Source: Macrostomum lignano
Taxonomy: Eukaryota
Length of the DNA stretch: 52,414 nucleotides
Direction of reading: 5' to 3'
NCBI GenBank assembly: GCA_002269645.1
Contig: NIVC01002980.1
Coordinates: 1 to 52,414, forward strand
Shown one piece after another: positions 53-52,414 of the stretch. The notes beneath the pieces are model-generated. The model made no database searches and was not told the origin of the DNA. It saw nothing but the letters and a program-made list of their open reading frames with translations. Made by a program: the position numbers and the translations under genes. Numbering within the stretch: the stretch's first letter is position 1; each line of letters starts with the position of its first letter.

Positions 53-1276
53 ATGGCGCAAGACGAGAAAATAGTCAGGAATCGAAGTCAGTTGAGATTA
101 GGAACGAAGGCGAATAGATGGCCGAACATTTGAGAACGTAGTGAGAGAACTGCAGGGATCGTAAGAAGAATGGAAACCGAAAATCCTGAACCTAGAGTGA
201 TTTTGAAGTCGCATAACAGCGTAGCAAGCCAAAAGCCATACCGACTTGGCTCAGATTTCGAATTGTTTCTAAGAATCTTCAACAAACTACTGTCAAGGCA
301 ACGGTATAGATGAATCGGCCAAAGTGTATCAGCTATTGTCGCTCTAGACGAAGACGCCTATAGGTTTACATTAACTTAGGCCTAGCGAGCACCGTCAATT
401 TGAAAGCATCGAAAGACTTTAAAGGACAAATTTAAGCCCGTAGGACAGAAGGAAGAAGCGAAGCTAGAGCTGATGAACCGCAAGCAGAAGGAAGACGAAT
501 CATTAGAAGAATTTTACGACGCATTAGTTGAATTAGTTAGGAAGCAGGACTAGAGAATCAGGCTCGAGAGCGAGTTTCTGAACGATTTGAAGCCGGCATA
601 GCAAATTATAAAGTCAGGCGCGCAGTTATTGCCTATCGTAGAACCCATGAATCGAAGTATCAGACTCAAGATTTATTGACTGCAGCTAAGAACGAGGAGA
701 TCCTCGAAGAACTCGCAAACCCAGGTAGCCAAAAGAGTAGAAGGAAGCAAGAGGGCTCGAATACGTTAACGGCTCAAGTAGGGAAGGAACAGACGCCTGT
801 AGCAGCACCCAGCACGGGGCAAGGCCACCAGTCATTTGGACCTCAGTTTGCTTCCCCGAGCAACTATCCTTCGCAGTACCAATCGTACCAGAATTATCAG
901 CCTCAGTTCGACTACAGGCAATGGCAACCCAGGTTTGCCCATAGACAAATGAACCCAAGCTATAGGCCACAGGCACCAGTGCAGCCTCAGAATAGCTTCC
1001 GGCCACAGCATCATATGAGCAGCTACTCAAGACCCTATAATAGGCAGTCTTCGCCTTTTGTCAGGCCCGCCATGACACGCCCGCCACGCTTTGGTCACGA
1101 GGCCGGAGGGGCCAATGACAGGTTCAAACCTTCGGGGCGAACGCGCCAAATGCGAGAAAGGCCTGTTATGAGTGCGGCGAAGAAACTCACCTGGCCAGAG
1201 ACTGCCCAGTTAGACGAAATTCTTTAAACTACCGACGGGCGGCACCAAGGGAGGGCCAACCGCCCCCAGCCATTAA
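53..1276 (+). pseudogene. gag: Gag, broken by several 1-bp indels
   Basis: Fragments KPYRLGSDFELFLRIF and LELMNRKQKEDESLEEFYDALVELVR (retrotransposon gag motif), a Q/P/R-rich linker, and zinc knuckle CYECGEETHLARDC at 1164-1205. The knuckle is in frame 3, not the frame of the listed 676..1227 ORF. Confidence 0.8.
1223..1265 (+). promoter_or_regulatory. Putative -1 programmed ribosomal frameshift signal
   Basis: T TTA AAC heptamer (1223-1229) in phase with the zinc-knuckle frame, a 7-nt spacer, then a GGGCGG (1237-1242)/CCGCCC (1260-1265) stem. Confidence 0.65.
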
Positions 1277-4200
1277 ACCGATTCACTCCCAATAGAAGAG
1301 CTGCAGCAGTAGAGGACCAGCAAGACAGCTCAGTCAATGTAGAATATGGCAACTTAGTTTGGTACAATTATTACAGAGGCTACGGATTTCTGCGAGATAG
1401 CGATAATAGAGATATATTCTTTCATGTGACTAATACTAATATAGCAACTGATTACGAAATTATGCATTTTCTGCGCCAGAGGGCGACAGTAAAATTTATT
1501 CGCACTAACGATACTACTCATAGTAGGAAACAGAGAGCGGTCAATGTTAAAATTTGCTCAAACGAGGAACGCAGATTAGCAGAAATTGACAAACAGAAGT
1601 CAGCGAGCTTAGCTAGACAGTCAGAGGCGTTGACAGAAGAATTAGAGAAACGAAGCGAAGCTGCAGCAGCTCAGAGAAGTGCATTAAACAGCATAGACTT
1701 GCGACTTAGTGAAGTAGAAGGAAAGAAAGCTTCAGCAGACGAATCTAAGGTAGTAAAAGAATTATCAGATCTAAGAACCGAATTGAAGGACTTGCGCCAA
1801 TGCTTGGTAGAGAAAGTCCAAGAAGAATCAACGAAAGAAGAACCTGACAAGAGTGCGACGACAGCAGAACTTAGAGCTGAACTTAGGGAAATGAAGCAAG
1901 AATTAAGGAAGTTAGAGACAGCCATCCAGCGAGATGTGGCAGCTGAAAAGAAAGCGACAGAGAAGCAGGAGAAGACCGTAGAAGCAGACATATCTAGCCA
2001 ATTAGTGAATTCAGGATTATTCCTCGATAGCCAGATTAACGGATTAAGCGAAAAAATATTAGTTGACACCGGCGCCTCGAATTGCCTAATTGATAGTAAA
2101 TTATATCAGCGCCTCTATCCGGCAAATCATAGTTGAAGCCATGCTCAGTGAATATGCGATCCGCCAATGGCCAGACTTCAAATTTATTAGGCCAAGTAGC
2201 ATTGCGCGTCAGATTTGGGGACTGCGAGATTACGCACCCATTCTATGTTGCTGAAGGCTTACTAACATCATCAATAATAGGCATCGACTTGTTAACTAGG
2301 CATAAAATTAAATTAGATATAGCAGGAAAATCCTTAGAATTTAGTGATCGCAGAATTCCGCTTGTAACAACGAGTGATGAAACGCGTTGCGTCCTACTGC
2401 AAGTAGTCAAGAAAGTATCTATAGCACCGATGAGCGAAATTTATGTCAAGGCTAAATGTAAAGATATTCCAGAGACTGCAGAACTCGGCTTCATTTCAGG
2501 CCGCAGTCAAATTAGCGAGAAAGATGAGCCATTAGTAGCTAAAGCTATTACTAGATTGGACGAATTCGGCGAAACTTACGTTAGATTAATGAACCTGACA
2601 GAAGAGGCACAGACAATTCATAAGGATGAGGTAGTTGCGCAGTATCAACCGCTGAAGGAAGATGTAGAACTTTTCGCAATGTCAGAAACTGATTTAGAAG
2701 TAGGTGCGCAGAAGCAATCGAAGGCAGCAATTACGGTGCAAGAAGCTGATAGACTTAGGGATCAATTCCGCTTAAACGAGACCGATTTAAGTGAGGCTCA
2801 GAAGAGAAAAGTAATTGAATTATTACATCGTTATCAAAATATAGTTTCAAAGGATCAGTGGGATATCGGAAAGACCAGATGGGCGAATTCAAGATTGAGA
2901 CTACCGATGAAATTCCAGTCAGAATTCCCCTGCGCAAGCAAAGCCCTGAGCAACGAGAATTTGTTAGCGGGCATGTGCAGCAGCTATTAGAGCACGATTT
3001 GATTGAGCCCTCAGAATCTGAGTGGAGTTGCCCTATTGTTCTCGCCCGGAAGAAGTCCGGAGAATTCAGATTTTGCTGTGACTTCAGACAGTTAAATAAT
3101 AAGACTAAGAAGGACAGTTTTCCGTTACCGCTAATTCAAGAATCGCTGGAATCCCTGGCAGGCAACATGTACTTTAGCACCCTAGACATGGTCGGCGCTT
3201 ATTGGTCAGTGAAGGTCAGAGAGACTGACCGCGAGAAATTAGCGTTTCGAACCCATGATGGCCTGTTCCAGTGGAAAGTTTTGCCTTTCGGAGTCACGAA
3301 TGGACCCGCTTGCTTTCAGCGCATAATGCAGAAGATCTTAGGCGATTACGCTTATAAGTTTGCCTTACTCTACCTAGATGATGTAATTTGCACAGGCAAG
3401 AATTTCGAAGAAATGCTAGGAAATTTAGAATTAATTTTCTCTCGATTAGCAGATGCTGGAATGAAAATCAAGCCAGAGAAGACCTTTCTGTTTCGGAAAG
3501 AAGTCACCTTCCTAGGGCACACCGTCTGCCAGCACGGTATCTATACCAGCAAAGATAAGATAGAAAAAGTCCAGACATGGCCCCGGCCAGAGAATATCTC
3601 TGAGCTGCGCGGATTCTTAGGCTTAGCCGGCTACTATCGCAGATTTATTAAAGACTTTGCGCGAATAAGTGAGCCCTTGAATAATTTAACTAGAAAAGAT
3701 GTCAAGTATAAGTGGGATGACAGTTGCCAGAAGGCATTTGATCTATTAAAGCAGAAGTTAGTAAGCGCACCTGTGCTGAGCTACCCCAGGTTCGATAGCG
3801 ACGCGGGACCGTTCATCCTCGATGTCGACGCCTGTGACGTAGCTATAGGTGGAAATTTATTACAAGAGCAAGATGGGGAAGAAAGAGTAATAGCCTATGC
3901 TTCGCATCCGTTAAATGAGCATCAGTTGAATTACTGCACTACGATGAAGGAAATGTTTGCGCTGATATATTTCTTAGAACATTACCGGCCTTATCTGGTC
4001 GGCCGTCGTTTCAAGGTCAGGACAGACCACGCGGCCCTCCAATGGCTACGCAAGTGCCACGGTGCAAAAGGCATGTTAGGTAGTGGAACATGATCCTTGA
4101 GCAGTTTGATCAGTTTGAAGTTATTTCGAGAATGGAAGAATATGACTTTGCAATTCAGTACCGCCAAGGGATTGCCCATGGTAACGCAGACGCCCTGAGT

Positions 4201-6000
4201 CGCAGACCTCAGCGGGATGGTCCCCCGAAACGCTACCATGAGGAATGCCCCACTTGCAGTGCGACGAAGACAGCAACAGTCCACTGCGGTGCAATTAATA
4301 TCGATACGCCAGCGGGAATTGTAGAACTGCAGGAGAGCCAGCCAGAGTTGCTGCTGCTCAAGCAAAAGCTCAGACAGGGAGAGCCCTGTCCGCCCAAGAA
4401 TGAATGGGTTGGAATGAGCCGCAGTTATAAGTCTTTATTTAGCGATTATGAGCAGCTATTAGTGAAAAATGACATAATTTACAGGAATTGGATAGATTCC
4501 GAAGGCCGAAAATTTGAGCAGACTGTACTGCCGGAAAACCAAGCCCTGGAGCAGCAGTTGTTTAGAGCTTACCACGATCAAATGGCTCACGGCGGTATTT
4601 CGAAGACTAAAGATTTGATTCGACAGAGATTTTGGTGGCCAAACTATTCAACGAACTTAGATAGATATATTAAGACTTGTACTGAGTGCCAGACAAGAAA
4701 GAAATACGGGCCGAAGCCACGAGCGCCCTTAGAGCCAGAAGTCAGCAGTTACATGGGCGAGAAAGTACATATAGATTTCGCCGGTCCGTTCAACGCCACA
4801 GCACGGGGGAACAAGTACCTCCTGCTGATGGTTGATCACTTTACGGGCTGGCTAGAGGTAAAAGCGCTGAGAGATTGTACAGCTGAGAGTACAGCTTGGG
4901 CCCTGTACACAGAGTGGATCACTCGGCATGGTGCTCCTGAAGCGTTCATATCAGACAGAGGTACATCATTTACTGCAGAATTAGTGAAATCGTTAACCGA
5001 AAATTTCCGAATAGATTTGCGCCATACTACTAGCTACCATCCGCAAGCTAACGGTCGCTGCGAGCGCATGGTCAGAGTAGTGAAAGATGGAATCAGATTA
5101 GCCCAGAGTGAACTCAGTTTGGCATGGGATGAGGTGCTTCCGCACGCTTTGATGGTTCAGCGAAGCACAATCAGTGAAAGTAATAAGTTTAGCCCGTTCG
5201 AATTAGTCTATGGTCGAAAGATGCGGCTACCGGTTGATGCTGAGCTCGGATTGCCTGCACCGGAGCGCAAGACCCGTGATAAACATTTACATGATCTGTA
5301 TAAGAAGTGCATGGAATCGTATAGAATCGCCAGAGAAAAGCAGCAAATATCAGTCAGGCGGCAGAAATCTAATTATGACACGAAAGTATTCCAGCAGTAT
5401 TATCAGCCAGGTGACCTGGTCTGGATAGCGAATACGCAGAATTGTTATGATACGAATAGGAAATGGGTAGGTCCGTACCGAGTGCTAGAAGTAAGAAATA
5501 ATGGAAAAAATTTAAAGATTGAGCCCGGTCCAAAGGTTGACCGAATAGAGCAACCCGTCAGAATTCATGACGTAGTGACAGTAGACAGAACAAAGCCCTG
5601 CTACTTGTCAGAAGAAAAGTTGCGTCAATATCGAGAAGAGGAAGCTGTAAGTGCTAGTGATGACGGCTCGGAGGAGTCAGAAAGAGTCCAAGTGGAGATT
5701 CAGAGACCAGAGAGAATTAGATTTTTGCAACGTGAGAGAACTCACGAAGCTACTGGAAGTAATATAGATAGAACAGTGGAAAATACTCAGACAGCGGCCA
5801 ATGCAAACCAGCAGGCGCAGGCGAGTCCTGCGGGGTCTCAGGCCAGGCAGAGTCCTGTGCGCACTCCACCGAATTTAATGCATCTGAGCCCGGTGCACAG
5901 TACGCCCCCGCAGCGGGCAGGCACGAATAACGTTAGCTGGATACCGCGGCTGCGGAACCGCGCGGCGATTAGACCCCCGGAACGATACGGTTATCATTGA
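1223..6000 (+). pseudogene. pol: Pol polyprotein: cold-shock-like domain, coiled coil, aspartic protease, RT, RNase H, integrase (split by 1-bp deletions)
   Basis: Motifs ILVDTGASN (~2065), LYLDD (~3371-3382), DVDACD...EMFAL...TDH, YHDQMAH...CTEC, HIDF/ISDRG/CERM and WVGPYRV. One added base at each of ~1265, ~2133, ~2879 and ~4085 joins the ORFs. Confidence 0.9.
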
Positions 6001-6594
6001 ATGGAGTCTATAGAAACGAAAGTACTGTCGAGACGAAAATTTCAATTGTATTACTAATAGTAACTTGTCGAGACATACGCGAGAAATTTGTTGAACGAAA
6101 ATGGAACCGGAGAAAAATAGTCAATAGAAATTACAATAAAGACTTGGAAGCGCTGATGTTGACACTGCAATTGAGGGAGTTGAAGACGAACTGCTCGAGC
6201 TGCCACACCTGGTAGATTCCAGGACGCTAATGAAAGAGAAATACCATAGACGACCATAGAAGATATGAAACGATTGGAAGTTGCAAATAGAAATTGGAAT
6301 TGAATTGAGCCCAGATTGAAGTCGTCTGCGGTTCCATCGGCCAGTATATCCGGAATTATTATTATGGGAAAATTATTAAGGAATAAATATTATTATTTAA
6401 ATTATTAAAAACAGTCTTGCAGTAGAACTGACATGCGTGAATATTCGATAAAAACATAAAAATTGTAAAAGCTTCATAAAAACAACACAAAAATATTATT
6501 CAGATTGCTTCAGTCAGAAAACTGCTTGACACAAAAAATATTAAAAACTCACAGTAGACCGACATGTTACATGTTGCAGCTAGAAATGTCTGAA

Positions 6595-6898
6595 GCGTCC
6601 TGGGCACGACGTTAAACTGCAGCCGCTGGAAAGGAAGTTCACTAGAGCCGGCGTCCTGGGCACGACGTTAAACTGCAACCGCTAGGAGAGAAACTAACTA
6701 ATGATGCGTCTTGGGCACGACGTTAAACTGCAGCCGTAGGAAGAGAAATTACCAAAAGAAGAATGAAGTGCGAGAAAGGAGCCCGGTCGGGTGAATTTAT
6801 AGTTTTGTCCTGGGCACGACAGAAAACTGCAGCCATTGGGCGGTGAATTTCGCCACGGGGATTGGTCCTGGGCAAGACCGTAAACTGCAGCCAATGGG
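6595..6898 (+). repeat. Five ~35-nt hairpin repeats with variable spacers in the retrotransposon 3' UTR
   Basis: Core GTC-YTGGGCAM-GAC-nnAAAC-TGCARCC-nnn-GG at 6595, 6651, 6706, ~6805 and ~6863. Confidence 0.85.
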
Positions 6899-7665: not shown

Positions 7666-8789
7666 TGTAGTGTGAGCATCTTTGCGTTTATTTTGTTGTA
7701 AATTGACTGCATTAGTTTCTATATTGTTATTGAATTGTTATTTTGCTTTAGTTTAGTCATGCGTTTTTTGTGTACTTTTTCTAGTTGGTTGAAATCTAAA
7801 ATGGTAAACAGGTTAGAGTTAGACGCCGTTTGTGACTCAGCGGAGGGTTGAGTTTGTCTGCGAACCCCAGCTTTGCGCGGCCAGCCAATCAGAACCGGCC
7901 TGGACCCTGGCACGCGGCAAGTTTCAATTCTACCCGGCGCCGCGGGCACAGTGCAATTCGGCTTAAGCAAGCGGCCGGCCAGACGACCACCACCCGGCTT
8001 GAGGGGGTTTTGAGGGGTTGCGACTCTGACTATATATGAAAGTGCGTTTTGGCAATCGGATCTCGCTTCTCTCTCCTTTCCCCGGTTTTGTCTTGTCCAG
8101 TTCCCGGCCGGTGGCCCGACTTTTCCTCCCCTTGTTGGTTCGCGCTTTGAGGCGTTTTGATTTCATCACCCCCGGTCCATATCTTTGTTCCCGCCCAACC
8201 GCAGTAGTCTTGTGGCGTAACGTCTACGGCAAATTCCTGTCTGAAGTCGTCGCTATCAAGCGCGGTTAGATAGAGACTGTCGGATCTGATCAAGTACGCG
8301 GCCTCGACCCCGAGGGCCTCAGTGTTACACTGAAGGGCAGTGCCGATAGAATTTAGTCGGTACTCCGTTGAACGGTCGGTTCGGCAGGGCTCTCGTTTGA
8401 GAGTAGGTTCTGGCTTAGGCCAGGGGTTAGGAGTCTTCTCCGTGGTCGTGTTCGGTTCTTCTCCTTCTTCTTCAAGCTGAGATCCGCTTGTCAGTGCGTA
8501 TGCGTAATATAATCATTATTATTAATCGTTACTATTCGTTATCATCAGTCTAATTATCTGCGTCGCGAAATTGCTTGAATCCTGTAACTCGTATAACCGA
8601 ATTAAACCGTCTAGCCAATTATCAGTTGTATCACATAGGATTATCACTCTCTAAATCTTTCGGTTTGTGTTCCCTCGTGTTCTTTATTTTCTTGTACCGT
8701 ACCTGCGGCTATTGGAGAAAGACTGGTAGGACTCGCCGACCGGCGATAGGCGATTAGGATTAATAGCTTTAAAATCTTCGAACGCTCCA
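7666..8789 (+). repeat. 3' LTR (right end uncertain)
   Basis: Starts with TG right after the PPT and has TATATA at ~8031. CpG-rich composition changes to AT-rich, CpG-poor DNA after ...GCTCCA at 8789. TTACA at 8329 is an alternative end. No 5' LTR is available for comparison. Confidence 0.55.
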
Positions 8790-10379
8790 AGTAGGTTTGT
8801 CTAGGGCCTAAAAAAAATTGCTCACCGTGCATGCTATTATCTAATTGCCTATTTATCACACTGACCTTTATGGAAAGTCAGACAACATTATAATAACAAT
8901 TACTTTAAGCTACACTATGCTATATACATTACAAAAAAGACTAGGGCTTAATATAGTAGGCCTTGCAACATTTAATGTCAATATATAAACTACATACAAA
9001 CAACTGCATGATCTTAGGCATGGGGATAAGCTGAAAATTATTGACATGAATCCATGTGGATAAAATTGGAATTATTGATATGGCCTACAAACTTGAATAG
9101 TGCAGTGGTAGGCCTAGCTATTTCAATAAGCTGCCATTGGGATAAGCTAGAAATTATCAACATAGATCTATCTATGTTAATGTAGATAAAATTGGAATTA
9201 TTGGCATAGGACCATGGGGATAATCACTTCCATCTGTAATCAGCCTAGAACTAGGCCTAGCACTAGGCATAAAAATTGATTGAGTAGGCCTAATTCGAGG
9301 CTTAAGAAGTTAAAGAAATTAACTTACTTGTGATTTGTACTTGTACAAGTTGTAGCTTTTATTTTTACTTATTGTTATTTTTATTTATAAAAAACATTTT
9401 GCCAAAAAATGATGGACATTTGCATGGATATCACCTAAAGCAAAGGTTATAAAAGAATGCCTAATAAGCAAAAAATGCATTAGGCAGCTTAGGCCCTATG
9501 CCAACTACAATTTGTGTTGCATTGAAAATTTTAGATATAAAAAGTCTTTTATACCTTCAGTATAATTTGAAAAAAAATTCAAAAGACAAAAGTAAGGACT
9601 AGCCCTACTAAGGTTTCTTTTTACTTAGGCAAGAGAGACTTATCAAATAGAACAAAAAGGACAAAGAATAATATTAACATAATAATATAAAAATCAAATT
9701 TAAATTCTCACTGGAGTTCCAACTCTCAACCTATGTGTAAAATATGAGATGTAAAATTTGCATTTGTTCCATTTCATTTGAATTAAAATTTGCATATTAT
9801 ATTACAGTAACCAACAATAATTACTCGTAGCGTCTAGCATGTGTTATTATAATTTATAGGCCATATTTAAGGGCAAAGCATATTTATTTTATTTACCAAT
9901 AAAACTATGTACACTCGTACAGTCTTACAAAACATGATACAAGAGAAGTAGTATGTGCAAGATACAACCCAAAATATAAAATTACAATGCTGCTATGCCA
10001 TTTTTGTTAGGCTTAAAATTTTTAACGTTTAAAGTCTAATCTATAGAGCACTAATTTATTTGCACTTTACTTGCACACAATTTTCCGGCATAAGCAGCAC
10101 GAAATATGCGGCAAGCTCTAACCAAGGAAACGTAACTATACCTTTTTTAGAAGTATTACAATAGTTAGATAATAACTTTATTAAAAAAATTATTCAGCTT
10201 TATTGTACGCTAAGTATTAGAAGTCTAGCTCAAAAAGTTTGACAGTAATTTGTTTAAATTATTAAAACTATTTTATATATATACAGAGGCGGCAGCCATA
10301 TTGATTTTTCAGCCCCTTAATTTCTTCGACGCCAGTTCGTAACCAGTTTGTACATTTATCTGCGCTTCTGTCGGTTACA

Positions 10380-11474
<1,095 letters not shown>

Positions 11475-12897
11475 GGGGCAATTCATAACTGAACTGAACT
11501 CAGTGTTCATGCCATAACCTGCATACCCATGTTGCCACTAAGACTAAGTACAGTGAAAAATAACAATAAGCTAAGTAGGAAGTTTTATTTAGGGCTTTAA
11601 GTATAAAATATACCTTTTAATGATATTTCTGAACAATATCTATCCAGACATTGGAGTGGCAACTTGGACAAATGCAGTCAAGTCGTTTTTACAAACTCAA
11701 AATTCTCTTTTTCAAACCCAAAAATGTCTTTTTAAAGCCTCATCGAATATTAATGCGAACCTATCGCTGTGCGGGGTCGCATGCTTGTCATCGACTGAAA
11801 AATTGTCTTTTTCGATCCAAAATAAACTTTTTAAACTATAACGTTGTTGCGTTGTTTTACTGTCTTCACTTAGGCTTTGTTAAAGCGAGCTTTAAAACTG
11901 AGAGCGCTAGACGAAAAGCCTGTTTAGGAAATCAAAATCACAAATCGTACACACAAGGCGGGTTAGGCAAACAATGAATTGGTATTCCAATGCAATAACT
12001 TGTAAAGTACACGTAAACTTGTTTACTAAATACAGGTAATAAAAGTACATTTGTTAAGAGATGTTCAGTGAGCAGACCTATATATTGTAATAAAGGCTTT
12101 AAATGTTTAGTTTAGCGAATAAGGTGACTTCTCGTGTTGGCTAGGGTCGTTTCTAGCTTAATTTGTGTAGACCAACTATAATTACTATATAATATTAATA
12201 TAGATACATGTAAGCTCTCGAAACGTCCGTTTAACTAACAAGTGTTAAACTAATTAACGCACAGCTACCCTTTACTTGAGAGGTGCAGTTAAGTGATATC
12301 AAATTAATTAAGTCGTGAAATTAGGGCTGCAAATAAAACCTGGACTGTGAAGACGCCTGCATTGCCCCCCAGTCAATTAAAACGCGTTATCTCTCATTTC
12401 CACACCTTGCAGTTCAGCATGTTTATAGTTGAAGATAGTGATAATTGAGGATAAAATATATACTTTCTTATCTATACATGTATTCAGCAAAGCACAACAA
12501 GACGTACAGGCGTAGATTTTCAACTGCTGACGCTTTCTCAGTTTCCAAAGGCATGTAATATAGTAGCTTGTAGTATTAGCTCGTACATGTATATTTGCTC
12601 CAGAAAACTGAGAAAAGCAATTAAACAGCTTCGAGTATTGTTCTAAGTCTAACAAAGGCCGCGATCGAGTATGAAGCGGAATGTACAAAATCAGGTACGT
12701 TATATGCATGTGCATCGCATAGGCGCGTAGGAACGGGGGGACAGTGGGCGCCATGGCCCCCCTATACTTTTAAAATAGGGGAGGTGGGCAGTAATGGTAT
12801 ATTTAAATGTAAAATGTAGACTTTTTTGCTTATTTTTGGTTTTTGCTGCTTTTGCATGAATGCATTTTGCTGCAGGGCGACAAAATATAGCGCTGCA

Positions 12898-28918: not shown

Positions 28919-31758
28919 TGGGGAATCTCGGACGACGCCCAGAAGCAGGAAATCCTCCTGTATACCGCGGGAAAAGAGGTTGCAGACATCTTTAAAGAGA
29001 TCTCACAGACGCGTCCCGCCACTGACCAGCCGGAGCAGCAAACGCTTGACTCACTCATAGCGGCGCTAACTCAGCACTTTCAAGGACGCGACAATGTGGT
29101 GTTCACCCGGTACCAATTCTGCCAGTGCACGCAGCTAGACGGCGAAGGCATCGACAGCTGGTACAACCGATTGTGCAACGCGGCTGAGGCCTGCCAGTTC
29201 GGAAAGCTGCGCCACAGTCCTTCATCCGCGACCAGATCGTCGCCTGCTGCCGCAGTGAATCCCTCCGAAAGCGGCTGCTCAACGTGCCCAACATCAGCCT
29301 CCCTGATGCCCTCCAGCTGGCGAGAACAAACGAAGCAGCCAGCCAGCAAGCGGCAATCATGGAGCGCTCGGCAGCCGGACCAGCTGAAGAAGTACATGCG
29401 GCTCGCGACAAGCGCCCCACCAGGCGCCCGCCAGCCAGCCCGGCCGACAAATGCCTGCGGTGCGGAGAGCCCGGCCACCGCACTTGCAACTGGGCCCAAG
29501 GCAATTAGCGCTGCAGCAACTGCGGCAAGCTGCACCACCTGGCGAAGGCCTGCCTAAGCGGCCGCGCACGCATTAACATGGCAGAGCCTGAGCCAGAGGA
29601 ACCAGCAGTCGTGTGGCGCACCTGGCGGAGGCGGTATTCTCCAGCCTCGACCCCAGCCGCAAAAGCGCCACCTTCAAAGCGGTCATCAACGGCGCGAACG
29701 TACCCGTCCTGATCGACAGCGGTGCGAGCTGCAACGTGCTCAGCCAGCGGACCCTTCATCTAACGGGAGCATCCGAGCGGGCGCTTCAGCCCACGCACAC
29801 GAGGGTCCATCCTCTCGGAGCAGCGAGGCCCCTGACACCCGCTGGCCAGATCACTCTGCACACGAAGATCAGCGGCAACTCGGAGAGAGTGCGCTTCATC
29901 GTCATCAGAGAGGACTGCATCACCATCCTAGGCCGCGAGACAAGCACGCAGATGGGGATGCTGAGGGTCGGACCGCAGGCCGAGACAGCTCTCACCGCCG
30001 GACTGACACCAACGGTTAACGACCTGCACCTTCCGCAATACTTGCGACTGTCATCGATCATGAAGGAGTTCAGCGACAGGTTTCAAGGAATCGGCTGCAT
30101 CAAGGGCGTCTCAGTCAGCATCCAGCTGAAGGAAGAAGCGGTGCCAGTCTGCCACCCTCCGTCTCGAGTTCCGGTGCATCTTCGAACCGCCGTGGAAAAG
30201 GAGCTGAAGGGCCAGCTAGCAGCCGGCATCCTGGAGCGAGTGACGGAGCCCAGCGCTTGGAGTTCACGCATGGTGGTCGTTCCAAAGGCCTCGCCAGGCG
30301 AAATCCGCATCACGCAGGACCTGAGGGACGTCAATAAGTACGTCATTCCAGAAAAGCAGCCAATACCGACATTCGAAGAAGTCACCGACGAGATGGCCGG
30401 CTCCACCTATTTCTCCGAAGTAGACGTTTCCAAGGCCTTCATCGAAGTCATCTACCAGCCGGGGGCAGATAACCCGGCAGATGTCCTGAGCCGCCAGCCA
30501 CGACCAACACCACCGAACAACGAGGGCGAGGATCTCGACACGGCCTACATCGCAATGACAGCACAGGCAGCAGCGCCGAACAGCATCAGCCTCGACACGA
30601 TCAAGGTGGCCGCCGCAGGCGACAAGGCGATCCAAGCCGCCGTATCCGGGCTCCGGTTCCATCGGTGGCAACTCGATAGCCACGACACGCGCAGCCTGCA
30701 CGGCCTGCGGCACGAGCTCTCACAACTCGTAGCACGAGCGACTCGTACAGCGATGCAACCGAGGCCTCAACAAAGCAATCAGAGCGGCGATTTTGGAAGG
30801 CAGCGACTGGCAGGCGGCACTGGACGACTACCTGGCTGCATACCGGCGAACACCGCACGCAGCAACCGGCATGGCCCAGCCGACCTGCTATTCGGCCGAC
30901 AGCTCAACGACACGATCCCCAGCTTGCGCCACTCCCGGCCGGTTGACGCCAGGCGACAGACCGTCCGCGGCCACGACTACAGGGCGAAGGAGCGGATGAA
31001 GGCCTTCGCCGACAGCAAGAGGGGCGCCACCGACCACCAGATCACCGTAGGCGACCTCGTACTCCGCCGGCTCACCAACCGCAGCAAGACCGACCCCTTC
31101 TTCGAGGCCTCGCCATGGACCGTGACAGAAGTCCGCGGCAACACCCTGCAGCTTCAACGTGCCTGCCAGAGGTGCTCCAGGCACGCCACCCACGTCAAGC
31201 GAGTCTCCCAGGCAGCCGACGAGTGGCCGGGTGACCCCGGAGAACGCGACAGCGGACAGGACAGCCGGCCGGATGAACCAACCGGCCCGCCCGAGCCAAC
31301 CGGCAACCAGGACGTCCCTCTCGCCAACAGGCCGCACCCCCGACAGGCCAAGGAGACGCCGAAACGCTACGAAGAGGGCGACCGGCGAAAGGCTCTGGAC
31401 ATCTGACAGCTGGCGGAACAGCAGCAAGGACTGATCATTGACTCTAATGACTGACACTGATTACTCGATCGCGCGTAACATGAACCCAACGTTGTACCCA
31501 ACCCCACCCCGGGTTCCAATCCACCAGACGAGGGATGTAGCATGCGCAGGCAGGCAGTTCGGGCACCTAGTTTGCACTCCGTGACCGCCATCCAGCCTAT
31601 CCACTTCGCTCTGCTCGAGCACATCCCAACGCGCACTCAATGAACCGGAAATCTGTGTTCTACCAGACAATAAATACAGGCACAGGCACATTCTATTTCT
31701 CCACCTTTTTGAGTGGCTAACTAACACTCGCAACAACCAGCTAGAGTTGCTCGCTACA
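28919..31758 (+). mobile_element. 5'-truncated, internally deleted Ty3/Gypsy (Mag-like) element
   Basis: Gag QEILLYTAG...RYQF...Q...IDSW...RL; two Cys/His knuckles (CLRCGEPGH, CSNCGKLHHLAKAC); PR IDSGASCN; RT start joined directly to IEVIYQPG...ADVLSR; IN C-terminal part YRRTPH...PADLLFGR. Confidence 0.88.
31536..31758 (+). repeat. 3' LTR (223 bp) of the Mag-like element
   Basis: Follows purine tract GACGAGGGA, has perfect TGTAGC...GCTACA termini and AATAAA at ~31669. Confidence 0.8.
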
Positions 31759-33306: not shown

Positions 33307-36300
33307 TCATATTTTCACGCATAACTCCTTGTGTTCCTTCCAATGTTTCCGCTGGCAAACCCGGTCGCAGTAGTGGGCGTCCTTGCATCTGCTGCAGCGG
33401 AAGTGGGCATCGGGCAGGCCGCAGGCTGCGCACTGAGCTCCACTCAGCTGAGATGAAGCTGAGTCTTTAATGGGACCAAGCAGCTTCAAATCTGCTGCCA
33501 GATGCATGGCTTCGAGCATGGATTTAACCTGATTCTTTGGAGGGAAATCCTTGATTGGTGGAAAGCACGGAAGCCTCACCTCTGCACTCTCAGCGCGCAG
33601 TGCCTTCTCAAAGTACTCCCTTGCCTTGCGCTCGTCCATCAATTGAATATATTCACGACTGATGCAATAGAGGGCCTCCGGGACCTTGCGATTGTCGGGC
33701 TCGTTTGAAGAAATAAATTTCTGGTAGGCTTCAATGACTGCTTTTGGGTTATTCCGACCCTGCATTCTCAAGCACGTCGCTCGTTCATAAAGCCACGCTG
33801 GCTCACTCTCAAGCTCCCGAGCTTGGTCGATAGCTCTTAGACAGCTATCAAAGTCACCAATAGTGCAGTACATTTGGATCAGGAAGGTGTGGTAGTCAGC
33901 GACAGCTGGGTCCAGTTCGGTGCACGTCTTTGCCATTTCAAGTAGCTCGGCGTCGCTGCTAAGTTGACGTGTCTGATGGTAGCGCATGATTACAAACAGT
34001 GCAGCGGCATCTCTGTCATCGTTCCTAAAGGCTTTGGTTGCAGCAGAGTAGAAACTTTCCCAAGTCAAAGCATCAATATCAAGCGGCTGCCAGGTACTTC
34101 CAGCTTTCCGAAACAGATGAAATGCTTCAGAATGCTCGCCGCCTTGCAGGGCTGTGTAGGAATCAGCCAGAAGGCCCAGGCCAACAAAATACTTTTTTGC
34201 CGTCTCAGACCCCGTGATTACCCTTTCGGCCATCACGTTGATCTCATGATTCAAATCATGAAAGCAAAGACCTGGTGCTGGACTTGCTTGTCGAGGTGTA
34301 AAATACTTGCGCAGCTTTTTAATTGCATCTCTCAGCGATGGATCTGGCACCGAAGAGTCGCAGTATCTCTCACATCTCTCGTCGCATGAAAGTCCTTCTT
34401 GCGAAAGCCCATTGATGCCTTCAAACTTTATAATTTCATTGAAAAATTCAATCACGTCACTGATGACATCTGGAGTTTCTCGCTTGGATCGAATCATCCA
34501 TCTGCGTGCTTGATCCACATCTCGCTTGCAGCCTTGCCCCAGTGACAGCAGACGGCCCAGAATCCATTGCGCATCAGCATTTTCCCATTCAACAGCCTTT
34601 GAAAGAAAAAACACTGCTTCTTCGCTTCTATTCTGCTGCAGAAGCAAGCTGCCCAGGGCAACAGTAGCCTTCTCGTGACCCATATCCGAAGCTTTTTTGA
34701 AGTATTCCTCCGATTGCTTCAAATTTGTTCGGAATCCGCCTTTACCCCTCATGTAGTTTTCGCCCAGAAGAAGCAGTGCTTCTTTGTCGTTTTTTTCTAC
34801 CCTTTGCATAATAACTTTTTTTGATTCATTAATTCTCGCACCAAGAGCGCCGCTCTGTGAAAGCTTCTGCAGAGCTCTCAGAGATCCTGGGAGGCCCTGA
34901 TCCGCAGCGGCTTGAAGCAGCTCCGTCGCTTTTACTGTGTCCACGGGTCCTCCCCGCCCTTCCGCAAGCATAAGTGCGAGGTTGTATCGGGCCTCAGCCT
35001 GGCCCAGATTGGCAGACTCCTGGTACCACCAGCGCGCTGACGCCAAGTTTTGCTTGCAGCCGGTGCCGTTTTCGAGTGCCACGCCGAGGTTGTTCATACC
35101 TGACGGGCAGCCGTGCTGAGCAGATTTCACAAACCATTCGAAGGCGAGCTTATTGTCTTGATCAACGGTCAGACCGTCTCTGTAAGCCATTCCGATTGAG
35201 TTCTCCGCTTCAGCAACGCCAACATTCCGAAAAATCGCGGAGCCGTCATCCAGATAGGGCTTCTGCCCGGCGGCTTGGTGGCACAAATTGATATATTTCT
35301 TTGAGTCACGAGCCAGCCCAGCTCTGCCGTCTTTGTACATCACAGCTAAATTGTACAGCCCATTTGCGCACCCACGCGTTGCAATTGATTGGAATATTCT
35401 AAGCGCCCTCTGCTCTTCAGCAAAATTGCCCCTGCCGGACTGCAGGATCTGATGAGCCTCAATAATTTCGGTGTAGCTTTCGCTTTGATAATCGTTCATT
35501 GGGCTGACATCGCTAGGAGAAACATTGGAAGATTGTTGAATTATGTTCATTTGAGAGTGGCGGGCAACTTCAGGATCATTCAGCTCCCCAAGACCACCAC
35601 AAAAGGCTGCTTTCTCACTCTTTCATCAATTAAATAAGCTTGACAATCTCTCTTCCTCAGAAGAAGAATATCATCTCTGGGATCGCGGACCAAGCCTCCG
35701 TTGCAGATGGCCAATGCTTCTTTAAAGAGCCGAAGCTTTACAAGAGCTTCCGACAGAATTCGATAGAACTTTACCGGCTTTGGGTCCAGCTGGATTGCAT
35801 CTTCCGCATCTTCACGGGCCAGGTTAAATTTGGATAGTCTGAGCTCGCACAGAGCTCGGTTTGAGTACAAAATGGCCAAATTTGCATTGATTCTGATGGC
35901 TTTTGTGTAGCAGTCCATGGCATCCGCCCATCGCTTATTTCCATAATGCTTGTTCCCCTCGACCTTCAGCTTCTCCCAGTCTTCGCCAGAAACGCCAGCA
36001 AACTTCAATATTTCTCTTCTGCAGTCGCTCAGCCCCATCAACTCCGCCAGCTTTAGAAAGCACTCGATATCATGCTCGAACCGGTTTGCATCGAAATCGT
36101 GGTGAGAATACTGGTTCCTAACGGCCCTGGCTCTCTCCAAGGATCCACGCAGTTGTCTCTGAACAGCCGGGTCAGGAAAGAGTTTCTGCAGCTCATCTAC
36201 AATCATTTTTAGCGAGTTGTTGAAATCCAGAGTGGTATTCAGTCCCAAGGCCGTCTTGAGTATCTGATTCATGCCGTGGGTGAGCAGCGAGACTGCAAAC

Positions 36301-36347
36301 TGGATTTTCGATGTGGCTTCGGCACTCTCCATTGGAGCTGCAGCCAT
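33307..36347 (-). CDS. HEPN-like / TPR / Sel1-repeat / TPR / zf-MYND protein (~1010 aa; one 1-bp frameshift at ~35600-35625)
   Basis: RNQYSH at 36102-36119; TPR GNKHYGNKRWADAMDCYTKAI; Sel1 repeats (AENSIGMAYRDG...AFEWF, ARYNLALMLAEG); MYND CAACG...CSRC...YCDRVCQRKHWKEHKELC. Adding one base makes the two ORFs continuous. Confidence 0.8.
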
Positions 36348-36670
36348 TGTATTGCAGGCGGATTCTGGAATTTGAAACGGAAGGTTGAATTTTTGGAAGA
36401 AAAGGCACGTCGAAACATAGCCCTAAGGGAACCGAGTAGATGGTCAAGCAAGCAATGATACTATTGCCCACAAGCTTTTTTCTTCTGTTTCTGCTTGAGT
36501 AAATGGGTTTGGAGTGCCAGCGTGGGGTCTCGCAGAGGGGAGACGGTCACTTAAGCAACTGGCAACTGTCCCTGGACTGAACAGCCGTATGCAGCCTTCA
36601 GATGTAAGACGCAATAGCTGCGGCTGAGCTGTCGGTTGCACATCTGGCCCATTGAGGCTAGTGAAATCAA

Positions 36671-36680
36671 TTACTATTAC

Positions 36681-36743
<63 letters not shown>

Positions 36744-36805
36744 TACTATTATTAATATTAATAATATTATTATTATTGTTAATATTCTTTTTATTATTAT
36801 TAATA
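36671..36805. repeat. (ATT)n microsatellite
   Basis: Long ATT run with degenerate flanks. Confidence 0.97.
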
Positions 36806-37269
36806 TTGGCGTTACACGCCTCGAGTATTATCAAAAGCGCTGACTGGGTAACATCCGGAGCCGGGTCTTGACCAGATCCGTCAGACAGACGGATATCAAT
36901 GGTAATTAAAGCTGTCAAAATTAGATTGGGGTGCACTTAAATCGAAATGGAGGGCCGCCAGGAATCTAATGACCTAAATATAGGAATGCTTGCATTAGGC
37001 AGGAAATAAGTCAGGACACAATCGGAGTTCGAGGCCATCAGCTTGTCTGTAAGTCGGTCTGTATTGTATACGAATAGAGATCAGTATACAGAAGCAAATT
37101 TGGGGCAATTTGGGCAGCAAAGCCATTCAGTCAGTAGCACAAGTAAAAACGGAAGCTTTGATATCGTTAAAAATCGATGTACAAATAAAAAATCTGAAAG
37201 TGTATAGCTCGTTCAACGTTAATCATCATTAAGTAGACAAATGTTTGTATCAACATTAAGAAAAAGTAA

Positions 37270-49719: not shown

Positions 49720-52213
49720 TCAGTCGCTCCTGACCGCCGCCGAGTCCTCCTCGCCCACCTCCTCGATGCTGGCGATCTGCCTGGCGTCCGCCTCCGCCCG
49801 GCTCCTCCACCGCTCCTTGTTGCTCGCCAGCAGCTCCAGTGGCCGCCAGGTCGCCTCATTCGGCGGCGTTGACTGCGGTGGCGGGGGCGGCGAAGTCGGC
49901 GGCTCCGGCGGCGGCTTCGCTTCGTCGGCGTTCTCGGGCTCCGCGGCCTCCTCGCTCTGCTGCTCGTCGATGTCGTCGCTGGCCTTCTTGCTGAGCTCCT
50001 GGACGCCGTTCAGCAGCTGCAGCAGGGTGCGGAAGCACGGCTCCACGATGTACTCGATGAAGCCTTCGGGAGGGATCGGACAGGTGAAAGTCATGGACAG
50101 CTGAACGCGCAAGGACGCCGCGCTTCCAAACCGTACGAAATGGACTGGAGAACCTTTAAGCCTATAGCCGAAGCTAAAATCGGGTTTCTAGAGTTAAGCA
50201 GAGGTGGTCGCGGTTAGTACGCAGTTAAATGGGATCATTATTACATGTTCGACCCTCGAGGTGGCCGCAGTGAGCCCGCAAGGCTGATCGGCAGGAGTTT
50301 CTGTGTTTCCAGTGTGCATTTGTCCTGAATTTACATCCTTCTACATAGTACAGAGGGCAAGAATATCGGTTTCAACAGCTACTCTCGCTTCCCTGGGCAT
50401 CTCCTGAGGGCTTCCCTACCCCCTATCAATGATTCAGGAATTTGAGAAAGCCAGAAGCCGGAGCTGGAGATGCTCAGATACTTCCCCATAGCCCAGCCTC
50501 CTTGCGGGGTTGGGATGGATTTTTTTTGAAAGAATGAATTGAAGAGCGGGGCTGCAGGGACTCCAGCCACAAGATCCTTGTCTGCCTGTCCGCTGCTTCC
50601 CATCCGCTGCTTCAAGGCGCTCTGCCCGGTGCTCACACGGCAGGAAAAGGGCAGGAATCCCCGCAGCTGCGCAGCCTGCGGAAGACAGCTGGGCCAATCT
50701 TCCCGTTCCCCAGCCAAGCTTTTATCTCGCCTCTCGATTCCCCTCCCCCACTCTGTCCCCCCGCCTCGCCCGCGAAGGCAGATCTCAGCCAGTTATTCAG
50801 TTGCCACAATTCGATTGCAGGTGTCCCCTCGCCTTGGTTTCCCGTCACCGCGTCGAGCTGAAATCGAATTATTCAGTTCTCTGTTCGACACGATTTGCGC
50901 TTCGCGAACTCTGATTTACTGATCAGCTGAGCCTCTGCGTCCCCTGAGCGTCCTCTACTCAGCGAGCCAGGTGAGCAGTAAGGTCACTGAGTGATTGGGG
51001 GAGTGAGCAGGGAGGTGACTGAGTGATTGGGGAGTGAGCAGGGAGGTCACTGAGTGATTGGGGGAGTGAGCAGGGAGGTGACTGAGTGATTGGGGGAGTG
51101 AGCAGGGAGGTGACTGAGTGATTGGGGAGTGAGCAGGGAGGTGACTGAGTGATTGGGGGAGTGAGCAGGGAGGTGACTGAGTGATTGGGGAGTGAGCAGG
51201 GAGGTGACTGAGTGATTGGGGGAGTGAGCAGGGAGGTGACTGAGTGATTGGGGGAGTGAGCAGGGAGGTGACTGAGTGATTGGGGGGAGTGAGCAGGGTG
51301 ACTGATCCAGTCTCTTTTTCTCTCTTATCTGCAAGCTTCAATCCAAAATTCCCAAGCCCCAGGCGCCATTCATTATCATACAAAAATTTCATTCAAAGCG
51401 ACGGCTCGCAGCCAGGAAATCCCTATTATGAAATCCCTCTGGGGACTGCGAGACTTGCGCGGACAATCTTAGGGAGAATTATCCTCATAACTGAAGGCAG
51501 CAGACCGGCTACCTCGATAAATTACTGTTGCTGGCTTCGAGAAAATTTCTCAGTTACGAGCTACGTCCCGAGTTCTCTAAGAATACCAGCTGCCTTCCGA
51601 AATGTCAATAATGTCATTGCCGTTACTGAGAGCAACCAGTCTCCACGGATGCCCTGATCCCCACGGATGCCCTGATCCCACGGATGCCCTGATCCCCACG
51701 GATGCCCTGATCCCCACGGATGCCCTGATCCCCACGGATGCCCTGATCCCCACGGATGCCCTGATCCCCACGGATGCCCTGATCCCCACGGATGCCCTGA
51801 TCCCCACGGATGCCCTGATCCCCACGGATGCCCTGATCCCCACGGATGCCCTGATCCTTTCCAGTCTCACCGACTTGCGAGGCAGCTATCATCGTCTTCT
51901 CCCGGTCGCACAGCGGGCTGCACTGCATCCCCAGCTGCTTCTCCTTGTCGCCCTGGGCAAAGAACTCCTCGCTGAGCAGGTGCGTCCAGCGCTCGTGCAG
52001 CGACCAGCCCTTGGCGGGGTGGCTGATGTCGGCCGAGTGCAGGATGTAGGACAGAATTTCCACCCGGGCAGGTTCTCCGGACACAGGCTGCCCTCCTTCA
52101 TGGCGGACACCTGGGCAAAGTGGGTGGACATGTCCGTGGCCAGCACCATGTCGATGACCATCGAGCGGAACTGACGGAACTCCACGTGGCCCATGTTCTG
52201 CAGGATGTTGCAC
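49720..52213 (-). CDS. PDE1: 3' exons of a PDE1-like 3',5'-cyclic nucleotide phosphodiesterase (51871-52213, 49720-50063); upstream exons outside the window
   Basis: MVLATDMSTHF...ILHSADISHPAK.W.LH.RW...EEFF.QGDKE..LG...SPLCDR...SQVG|FIEYIVEP.F with a phase-1 GT-AG junction. One 1-bp deletion at ~52066. The end of the last exon is inferred from the stop codon. Confidence 0.85.
50975..51302. repeat. ~32-bp G-rich minisatellite, ~10 copies (PDE intron)
   Basis: Unit gtgactgagtgattgggggagtgagcagggag. Confidence 0.95.
51644..51857. repeat. ~18-bp minisatellite, ~12 copies (PDE intron, next to the donor)
   Basis: Unit ccacggatgccctgatcc. Confidence 0.95.
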
Positions 52214-52414
52214 CTGCGGGGTAATTGGTTGTGGACTCGTTGCCAAGCGAAGCTGGTGCCGCAACAAAATCTGCTGCTATGTTTCTTTAGTTTTTCTGGC
52301 AACGAGCTGCTGACGCTACAGGCGCCCTACTGGCGCGAGGACAGGGGCGCTCTCAGCGTCTGCCCGCATTCTGTCGGCGGCATGACCGATGTTCGCGCCT
52401 TTGAACTGGTGTGT

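Follow-up and report, generated by a model that had tools for sequence, protein, structure and literature searches.

The locus described here lies on contig NIVC01002980.1 of Macrostomum lignano (assembly GCA_002269645.1), the whole contig of 52,414 bp being referred to hereafter as the window. A gene on the minus strand, occupying exactly 33307-36347, corresponds in its intact form to a protein of about 1,010 amino acids. This protein consists of an N-terminal Swt1-like HEPN domain, a three-TPR domain, a linker, about eight Sel1 repeats, a TPR superhelix and a C-terminal MYND finger, i.e. a small putative nuclease head on some 900 residues of peptide-binding scaffold. Confidence in these domain identities is high. 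The best reading of the combination is a ligand- or chaperone-controlled HEPN endoribonuclease, for which, by analogy with characterized HEPN enzymes, the chances appear evenly balanced.

Organization of the locus

The gene is read from two open reading frames (ORFs) that lie in different frames. The upstream ORF (36347..35580, 255 amino acids) encodes the HEPN domain and three TPRs, and the downstream ORF (35550..33307, 747 amino acids) encodes about eight Sel1 repeats, the TPR superhelix and the MYND finger (Table 1). A preliminary description of this DNA had listed an N-terminal helical domain, TPRs, about eight Sel1 repeats, further TPRs and a MYND finger; all of these are present at the locus, in that order. 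Its remark that they apparently occupy a single exon does not hold for this copy. PAA54040.1, 'hypothetical protein BOX15_Mlig026018g1', matches the downstream ORF with 100% identity. This NCBI model (690 amino acids) spans that ORF in part only and contains neither the HEPN-TPR half nor the MYND finger. No signal peptide and no membrane segment were found in the protein, which makes a cytosolic or nuclear location probable. A long AAT/ATT microsatellite (poly-Asn in translation) is situated at 36667-36936, about 0.3 kb upstream of the start codon.

Table 1. Positions in the window of the gene and of the features encoded by it.
Feature	Position	Strand	Basis or remark
Whole gene (Mlig026018g1 locus)	33307..36347	-	About 1,013 codons allowing for the missing base; intronless like its relatives
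Swt1-like HEPN domain, N-terminal, aa 1-120	35988..36347	-	Pfam HEPN_Swt1 weak here, 41.6 bits in P0015; AlphaFold2 pLDDT 85.4
D41 (acidic; start of helix 2)	36225..36227	-	Invariant, 32/32 homologues
R77-N-Q-Y-S-H82, Rx4H (R-N-x3-H) putative catalytic motif	36102..36119	-	Translation; homologue alignment
Three-TPR domain, Hsp70/Hsp90 co-chaperone ('carboxylate clamp') class	35643..35984	-	PDB sequence matches; clamp residues; conservation
One-base (G) deletion between the two ORFs	35603..35604	-	Alignment with the sister copy at L004
Stop codon of the upstream ORF	35580-35582	-	
Sel1-like repeats, about 8 (aa 45-356 of the downstream ORF)	34483..35418	-	Pfam Sel1 E 1.8e-37, 126.8 bits
C-terminal TPR-like superhelix, downstream ORF aa 438-692	33475..34239	-	AlphaFold2 pLDDT 83; Foldseek; weak Pfam TPR matches
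MYND zinc finger (C4-C2HC)	33319..33432	-	Pfam zf-MYND 36.1-37.2 bits, cutoff 22.7

The break between the two frames

A near-identical sister copy in the same assembly, Mlig026018g3 (PAA54034.1, P0100; contig NIVC01002981, locus L004), has a continuous frame across the junction, where it encodes ERVKKQPVCGGLGELNDPEV. At the level of DNA the sister reads CCTGTTTG and the window CCT-TTTG, so that the window lacks one G, between positions 35604 and 35603. In all relatives, among them P0100, P0040, P0045, P0080 and P0083, the frame continues through the junction, which lies within a conserved peptide, K-x-x-P-[VF]-x-G-G; in the window this peptide is divided, its RKQPF and GGLGEL parts falling in different frames. 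Intact copies encode one continuous polypeptide. A short intron (GT...AG, 35 nt), which would restore the frame, was considered and is ruled out because the break falls inside conserved coding sequence: the conserved peptide straddles it, and the sister differs by exactly one G. The one-base deletion may have arisen in the assembly or may reflect a genuine inactivation of recent date, and the evidence for each is weighed below.

The probable N-terminal HEPN domain

The N-terminal domain comprises about 120 residues, is helical and contains ERARAVRNQYSH, within which R77 and H82 delimit the putative catalytic motif. An AlphaFold2 model, with a predicted local distance difference test (pLDDT) score of 85.4, is all-helical, with helices at residues 5-34, 42-56, 60-81, 87-103 and 107-117. 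R77 lies at the end of helix 3 (60-81) and H82 is the first residue of the loop that follows, while D41 is placed at the start of helix 2 (42-56). In HEPN domains the motif stands where helix 3 ends, and a conserved acidic residue of helix 2 lies near to it (Anantharaman et al., 2013; PMC3710099). With the motif closing helix 3 and D41 in helix 2, the predicted topology agrees with that description.

Against the Pfam profile HEPN_Swt1 (PF18731; cutoff 27.5 bits) the window sequence scores 13.5 bits (E 0.093) as the whole ORF and 15.1 bits (E 0.029) as the domain alone. The homologue P0015, with the same layout of N-domain and TPRs and with 38% identity across 92% of the 255-residue ORF, scores 41.6 bits (E 1.8e-10). 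Membership of the Swt1-like family is assigned by profile comparison, transitively through P0015 and not on the window sequence's own score. HEPN_Swt1 is also the best or only weak Pfam match in 12 of 16 family members (E <= 1), and the other scattered weak Pfam matches are largely to HEPN families as well (DZIP3, Cthe_2314, HepT, Apea, RiboL-PSP, LA2681 and MAE_28990). Weak matches in the PADLOC library are to 11 families, nine of which contain HEPN domains (CARF-HEPN, Cas13c, Csx1/Csm6 and Cas13-ApeA). A scan of NCBIfam, a library without comparable models, gave scattered unrelated noise only. Among the homologues found, just one has a precomputed HEPN_Swt1 assignment.

A single Rx4H in 125 residues has little meaning alone; the signal is conservation of the motif at one alignment column, together with the invariant D41. 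Of 33 homologous domains aligned, 32 have R77, 31 have Asn or His at position 78, and 31 have H82. The exceptions are both M. lignano paralogues, P0040 (RDRHSR) and P0042 (TSRLST). The preliminary description had made its HEPN call depend on conservation of the motif in paralogues and orthologues, and with 31 of 33 homologues retaining it the call stands; it is further upheld by the above-cutoff score of P0015, by the 12 of 16 members on HEPN_Swt1 and by PADLOC matches almost only to HEPN families. The N-terminal domain is therefore very probably a Swt1-like HEPN domain, a well-supported assignment in which the fold is a predicted one.

The TPR, Sel1 and MYND scaffold

The first TPR block (residues 122-235) contains three TPRs (Pfam TPR_1, E 4.8e-10) and is the most conserved part of the protein, with an identity to paralogues of 0.6-0.77, versus 0.35-0.5 for the HEPN domain. 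Its top sequence matches in the PDB are STIP1/HOP (E 1.8e-23) and SPAG1 (E 1.7e-22), with RPAP3, Sti1, OEP64, CHIP, PP5, SGT and Tom70 also among them. By these matches the block belongs to the Hsp70/Hsp90 co-chaperone class, which the preliminary description had missed, and this makes chaperones a likely partner. The carboxylate-clamp residues of HOP TPR1, reportedly described by Scheufler and colleagues in 2000, are said to be K8, N12, N43, K73 and R77. K128, N132, N163 and K193 of the window protein are in register with the first four of these; position 197 is Ile, and an Arg is found one residue off, at 196.

The linker between this block and the Sel1 repeats is poorly conserved. The Sel1 region (PF08238; cutoff 30.7 bits) has five stretches that pass the Pfam threshold, and seven to eight repeats can be recognized by eye. 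The last 396 residues are modelled by AlphaFold2 as a TPR superhelix followed by the MYND finger. Pfam TPR matches are weak in this region; Foldseek of the C-terminal model returns, with a probability of 1.0, consensus TPR, MamA, kinesin light chain (KLC2) and OGT (E 6e-7), and also Pex5. The translated MYND finger (PF01753) has the ligand pattern CAAC...CSRC...CDRVC...H...C. MYND fingers bind short proline motifs.

Copies, turnover and distribution of the family

The window gene is a member of a small family of intronless genes that has undergone lineage expansion in M. lignano. An exhaustive HMMER search with residues 1-123 against 1.84 billion representatives gave only 20 proteins at E <= 1e-3, to which word-indexed searches added more. 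A profile search of a 5.8-billion-protein set with the family alignment returned two proteins only and added nothing.

In M. lignano there are at least seven family loci, situated in transposon-rich DNA, and at one of them (L003) two tandem copies lie 7.7 kb apart. The HEPN motif is intact in four copies: that of the window (g1), the frame of which is broken after the first TPR block; g3, in which the MYND finger is lost via a 7-nt deletion; P0043, where the MYND finger is out of frame after a T10 run; and P0044, the model of which is incomplete (866 amino acids) and ends before the C-terminal TPRs and MYND. The P0040 group (five copies of 1014-1015 amino acids) is complete and keeps the Arg, and its His is lost. 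P0042 has lost the motif and has a shifted MYND, and P0041/P0106, which have no HEPN domain, start immediately downstream of a mariner-like transposase ORF. In this assembly no M. lignano copy among those examined is complete and at the same time has its motif intact. At locus L005, P0041 (TPR-Sel1-TPR-MYND) lies about 0.8 kb downstream of the transposase ORF (7868-9181 and 9956-12691). It is suggested that the HEPN-coding 5' part of P0041 was lost to transposon insertion.

Complete proteins that retain both motif and MYND are found outside M. lignano, namely P0045 (1046 amino acids, assembly GCA_025491035.1) and P0083 (1058 amino acids). P0045 belongs to a tandem of three copies (L001), one of which is interrupted by a casein-kinase-like segment. 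At 38-1510 of this locus the first TPR block of that copy is followed, in place of Sel1 repeats, by a catalytic domain resembling casein kinase I, and the Sel1 sequence resumes in another frame at 1584-2024. The kinase-fused copy represents either a domain swap or a pseudogene, chimeric or retro-inserted.

Further hosts, as named in the source records, include a rotifer (Didymodactylos carnosus), an ichthyosporean (Sphaeroforma arctica), an amoebozoan (Nematostelium gracile) and 'Aphanomyces stellatus'; the relative in the last of these, on a 10.5-kb contig, is possibly contamination. The most distant full-length relative, P0058 (1127 amino acids), comes from a metagenome contig (L002), on which a Peptidase_C14 (caspase/metacaspase-like) gene adjoins it on the opposite strand at 5980-6816. 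An extra C-terminal segment of P0054 and P0058 was considered as a TTC5-type OB fold, and this was dropped as it had no Pfam support. No relative was found in IMG/VR contigs that would point to a viral origin.

The family is small, patchy across eukaryotes, tandemly duplicated and of fast turnover; in M. lignano it displays frame breaks, a truncation and two motif-less copies. Its members are publicly named 'hypothetical', 'TPR_REGION domain-containing' or 'MYND-type domain-containing', and a link to RNA cleavage is not visible in these names or in the domain lists consulted.

Other genes in the window

Directly upstream of the HEPN gene and on the same strand, a gene that looks like a Mab21/cGAS-like nucleotidyltransferase occupies 38252-40853 and is apparently split over several frames or exons. 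Its ORF at 38252-39637 matches Mab-21_C at 24.0 bits (cutoff 24.1), and that at 40395-40853 contains a GS...DxD-type motif (TGSFADGW...SDIDWTV) with a faint NTP_transf_2 match (E 0.08). A small heat-shock protein gene (HSP20/alpha-crystallin, E 3e-22) is found at 46523-47167, also on the minus strand. A polyubiquitin gene on the plus strand (10557-11474) encodes four perfect head-to-tail ubiquitin units and a single extra Asn; its antisense strand contains a spurious 320-residue ORF.

Retroelement sequence is present at two places on the plus strand, assigned from visible motifs only. An element resembling a long terminal repeat (LTR) retrotransposon (676-6000) has gag-like, protease, reverse-transcriptase/RNase H and integrase-like parts in five ORFs of 183-636 amino acids in successive shifted frames, and a GC-rich fragment (29613-31406) joins protease-, reverse-transcriptase- and integrase-like pieces. 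At the contig end an exon on the minus strand (51623-52267) contains a cyclic-nucleotide phosphodiesterase-like motif (HSADISHPAKGW), and next to it, on the opposite strand, is a coding tandem repeat with a 21-nt unit (PTDALI x10).

Proposed mechanism

In the proposed mechanism the HEPN domain would be a metal-independent endoribonuclease, active only when two domains pair and so join their Rx4H motifs. Endonuclease activity and dependence on dimerization are inferred from the HEPN RNases RNase L, Ire1, Csm6, Cas13 and HepT, and on this analogy we lean slightly towards a catalytically competent domain. Pairing would be set by what the peptide-binding scaffold of about 900 residues holds. Given the co-chaperone type of the first TPR block, the most concrete candidate partner would be a C-terminal acidic tail, for instance EEVD of Hsp70 or Hsp90; other candidates would be proline-motif proteins on the MYND finger and ligands on the Sel1 and TPR solenoid. 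That bound partners gate the HEPN domain in this manner is a tentative proposal, again drawn from analogy.

Switchable HEPN RNA cutters are known in immunity and stress, for example RNase L, Ire1, Cas13 and Csm6. The joining, in a eukaryote, of a HEPN domain with chaperone-type TPRs, Sel1 repeats and MYND would represent a new mode of control for such an enzyme. In its most specific form, which we consider distinctly improbable, the protein would be an independently evolved, chaperone-docked RNase, held on Hsp70/Hsp90 via the clamp TPR and MYND, released or dimerized when unfolded, viral or transposon proteins titrate the chaperones, and then cutting RNA. If true, a stress-to-RNA-decay switch resembling Ire1 and RNase L would have been built from entirely different parts, with a patchy occurrence in flatworms, rotifers and several protist lineages. 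As M. lignano is established in laboratories, knock-down should be feasible.

A role in immunity or against transposable elements is plausible, and on balance rather unlikely. Tandem duplication, copy decay and patchy distribution fit a conflict gene without demonstrating one. Other expanded eukaryotic Swt1-like HEPN domains (Daphnia, CXorf38) are predicted to be defensive RNases, and a defence or anti-transposon role would also fit that proposal (Anantharaman et al., 2013).

Alternative explanations

Several observations weigh against a controlled endoribonuclease. One set concerns the copy itself, since the window gene and its sister each have a different frame-breaking deletion. It is a substantial possibility, somewhat short of even, that the window copy is a dead or dying pseudogene, the deletion being real, with only a 255-residue HEPN-TPR stub or nothing made and any function residing in other copies. 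The break at 35603/35604 is as expected of such a gene, as are the truncations and lost motifs of other paralogues. The 7-nt deletion of g3 is separate, is not a typical homopolymer error and is accompanied by a stop, ahead of a MYND segment that is otherwise 99% identical. The window copy and g3 are separated by 11 non-synonymous and four synonymous changes, giving a ratio of non-synonymous to synonymous change (pN/pS) of 0.79, which is not distinguishable from neutral with so few changes. The g3 deletion, this ratio and the partial NCBI model favour real decay. However, 15 substitutions are too few to separate neutrality from constraint, and both ORFs are otherwise stop-free over about 1,000 codons. 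An ankyrin-repeat gene in the same window (41424-43702, minus strand) is likewise split into two overlapping ORFs, of 395 and 413 amino acids, apparently by a single missing G near 42573 (atgaag-gtcacgtg; expected AAMKGHVEILSELL). Together with the break of P0043 at its T10 run this looks like indel error in a long-read assembly, and favours the same cause at the HEPN gene.

The remaining points concern the fold and its activity. The check proposed in the preliminary description, a Foldseek comparison of the N-terminal domain with HEPN structures, gave no match to a solved HEPN: against the PDB the best E value was 0.5, to generic helical bundles, with no HEPN in the top 50, although Foldseek is weak on small helical bundles. 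The family profile gave only noise against PDB sequences (E values no better than 0.03, for the most part to poxvirus L1-type proteins and T4 lysozyme), and the window sequence, like most members, scores under the Pfam cutoff. These results could be read as an unrelated four- or five-helix bundle, in which the presence of conserved Arg and His residues is coincidental. That is very improbable, as one member (P0015) is well above the cutoff, the sub-threshold matches of two independent libraries converge on HEPN families where NCBIfam gave noise only, and the motif position agrees with the published topology (Anantharaman et al., 2013). The domain may alternatively be HEPN-like and bind RNA or protein without cutting, as has been suggested for that of Swt1, in a scaffold or co-chaperone adaptor that bridges Hsp70/Hsp90 and MYND-bound partners. 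The HEPN domain is indeed less conserved than the co-chaperone-class TPR block, the only M. lignano paralogue group found complete, the five-copy P0040 cluster, is without the histidine, and the HEPN domain of eukaryotic Swt1 is itself considered inactive (Anantharaman et al., 2013). Such an adaptor is nonetheless unlikely: 31-32 of 33 homologues, from hosts that are very distant, retain R-[N/H]-x3-H and D41, and it is difficult to account for this unless the residues serve catalysis or some other role of equal specificity. A ligand- or chaperone-controlled endoribonuclease stays the best reading of the family, at the even strength given above.

Comparison with known systems

The closest known group is the Swt1-like HEPN domain (PF18731; Abi2/Swt1 group, Anantharaman et al., 2013), the family's best and sole above-threshold profile match, through P0015. 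Shared with it are the R-N-x3-H at the end of helix 3, the acidic residue of helix 2 and lineage-specific eukaryotic expansions. In Swt1 itself, unlike here, the HEPN domain is paired with a PIN nuclease. The DZIP3/hRUL138-like group (PF18738) similarly combines an animal HEPN domain with TPRs and zinc-binding modules and has undergone lineage-specific expansions in invertebrates. The distant relatives P0058 and P0054 match its profile at 22.8 and 16.8 bits, below the cutoff of 27, whereas neither the window protein nor its close relatives match, and DZIP3 has a RING E3 ligase rather than Sel1 or MYND.

The likeness to RNase L and Ire1 (KEN domain) is by analogy only, in that their HEPN RNase is inactive until a repeat or sensor module binds ligand and dimerizes, Ire1 being tied to protein-folding stress. 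In the protein described here the HEPN domain is N-terminal, the TPR, Sel1 and MYND modules are unrelated to ankyrin repeats with 2-5A or to lumenal sensors, and no kinase, pseudokinase or KEN Pfam match was obtained in either ORF. The linking of a HEPN domain to the Hsp70/Hsp90 system, through chaperone-linked modules, has a precedent in sacsin. The HEPN domain of sacsin, however, is C-terminal and without the RNase motif, and is joined to DnaJ and Hsp90-like ATPase domains, not to clamp-type TPRs. The Hsp70/Hsp90 TPR co-chaperones (HOP/STIP1, SPAG1, RPAP3, CHIP, PP5) are 35-40% identical to the first TPR block, which has four of the five clamp residues in register and the fifth (Arg) displaced by one position; none of them contains a nuclease.

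The preliminary description had not recognized the architecture as characterized, and this is borne out. In the 2013 census of HEPN domains, Swt1-like domains occur solo and fused to PIN, dsRBD, NACHT, Death, CARD, ankyrin and AAA+ among others, and DZIP3 to TPR and RING, and the TPR-Sel1-TPR-MYND fusion is not listed (Anantharaman et al., 2013). A literature search gave no description of a HEPN-TPR-Sel1-TPR-MYND protein and no mention of the gene identifiers or of assembly GCA_025491035.1. The domain combination is real and previously undescribed, and represents one more eukaryotic HEPN fusion among many.

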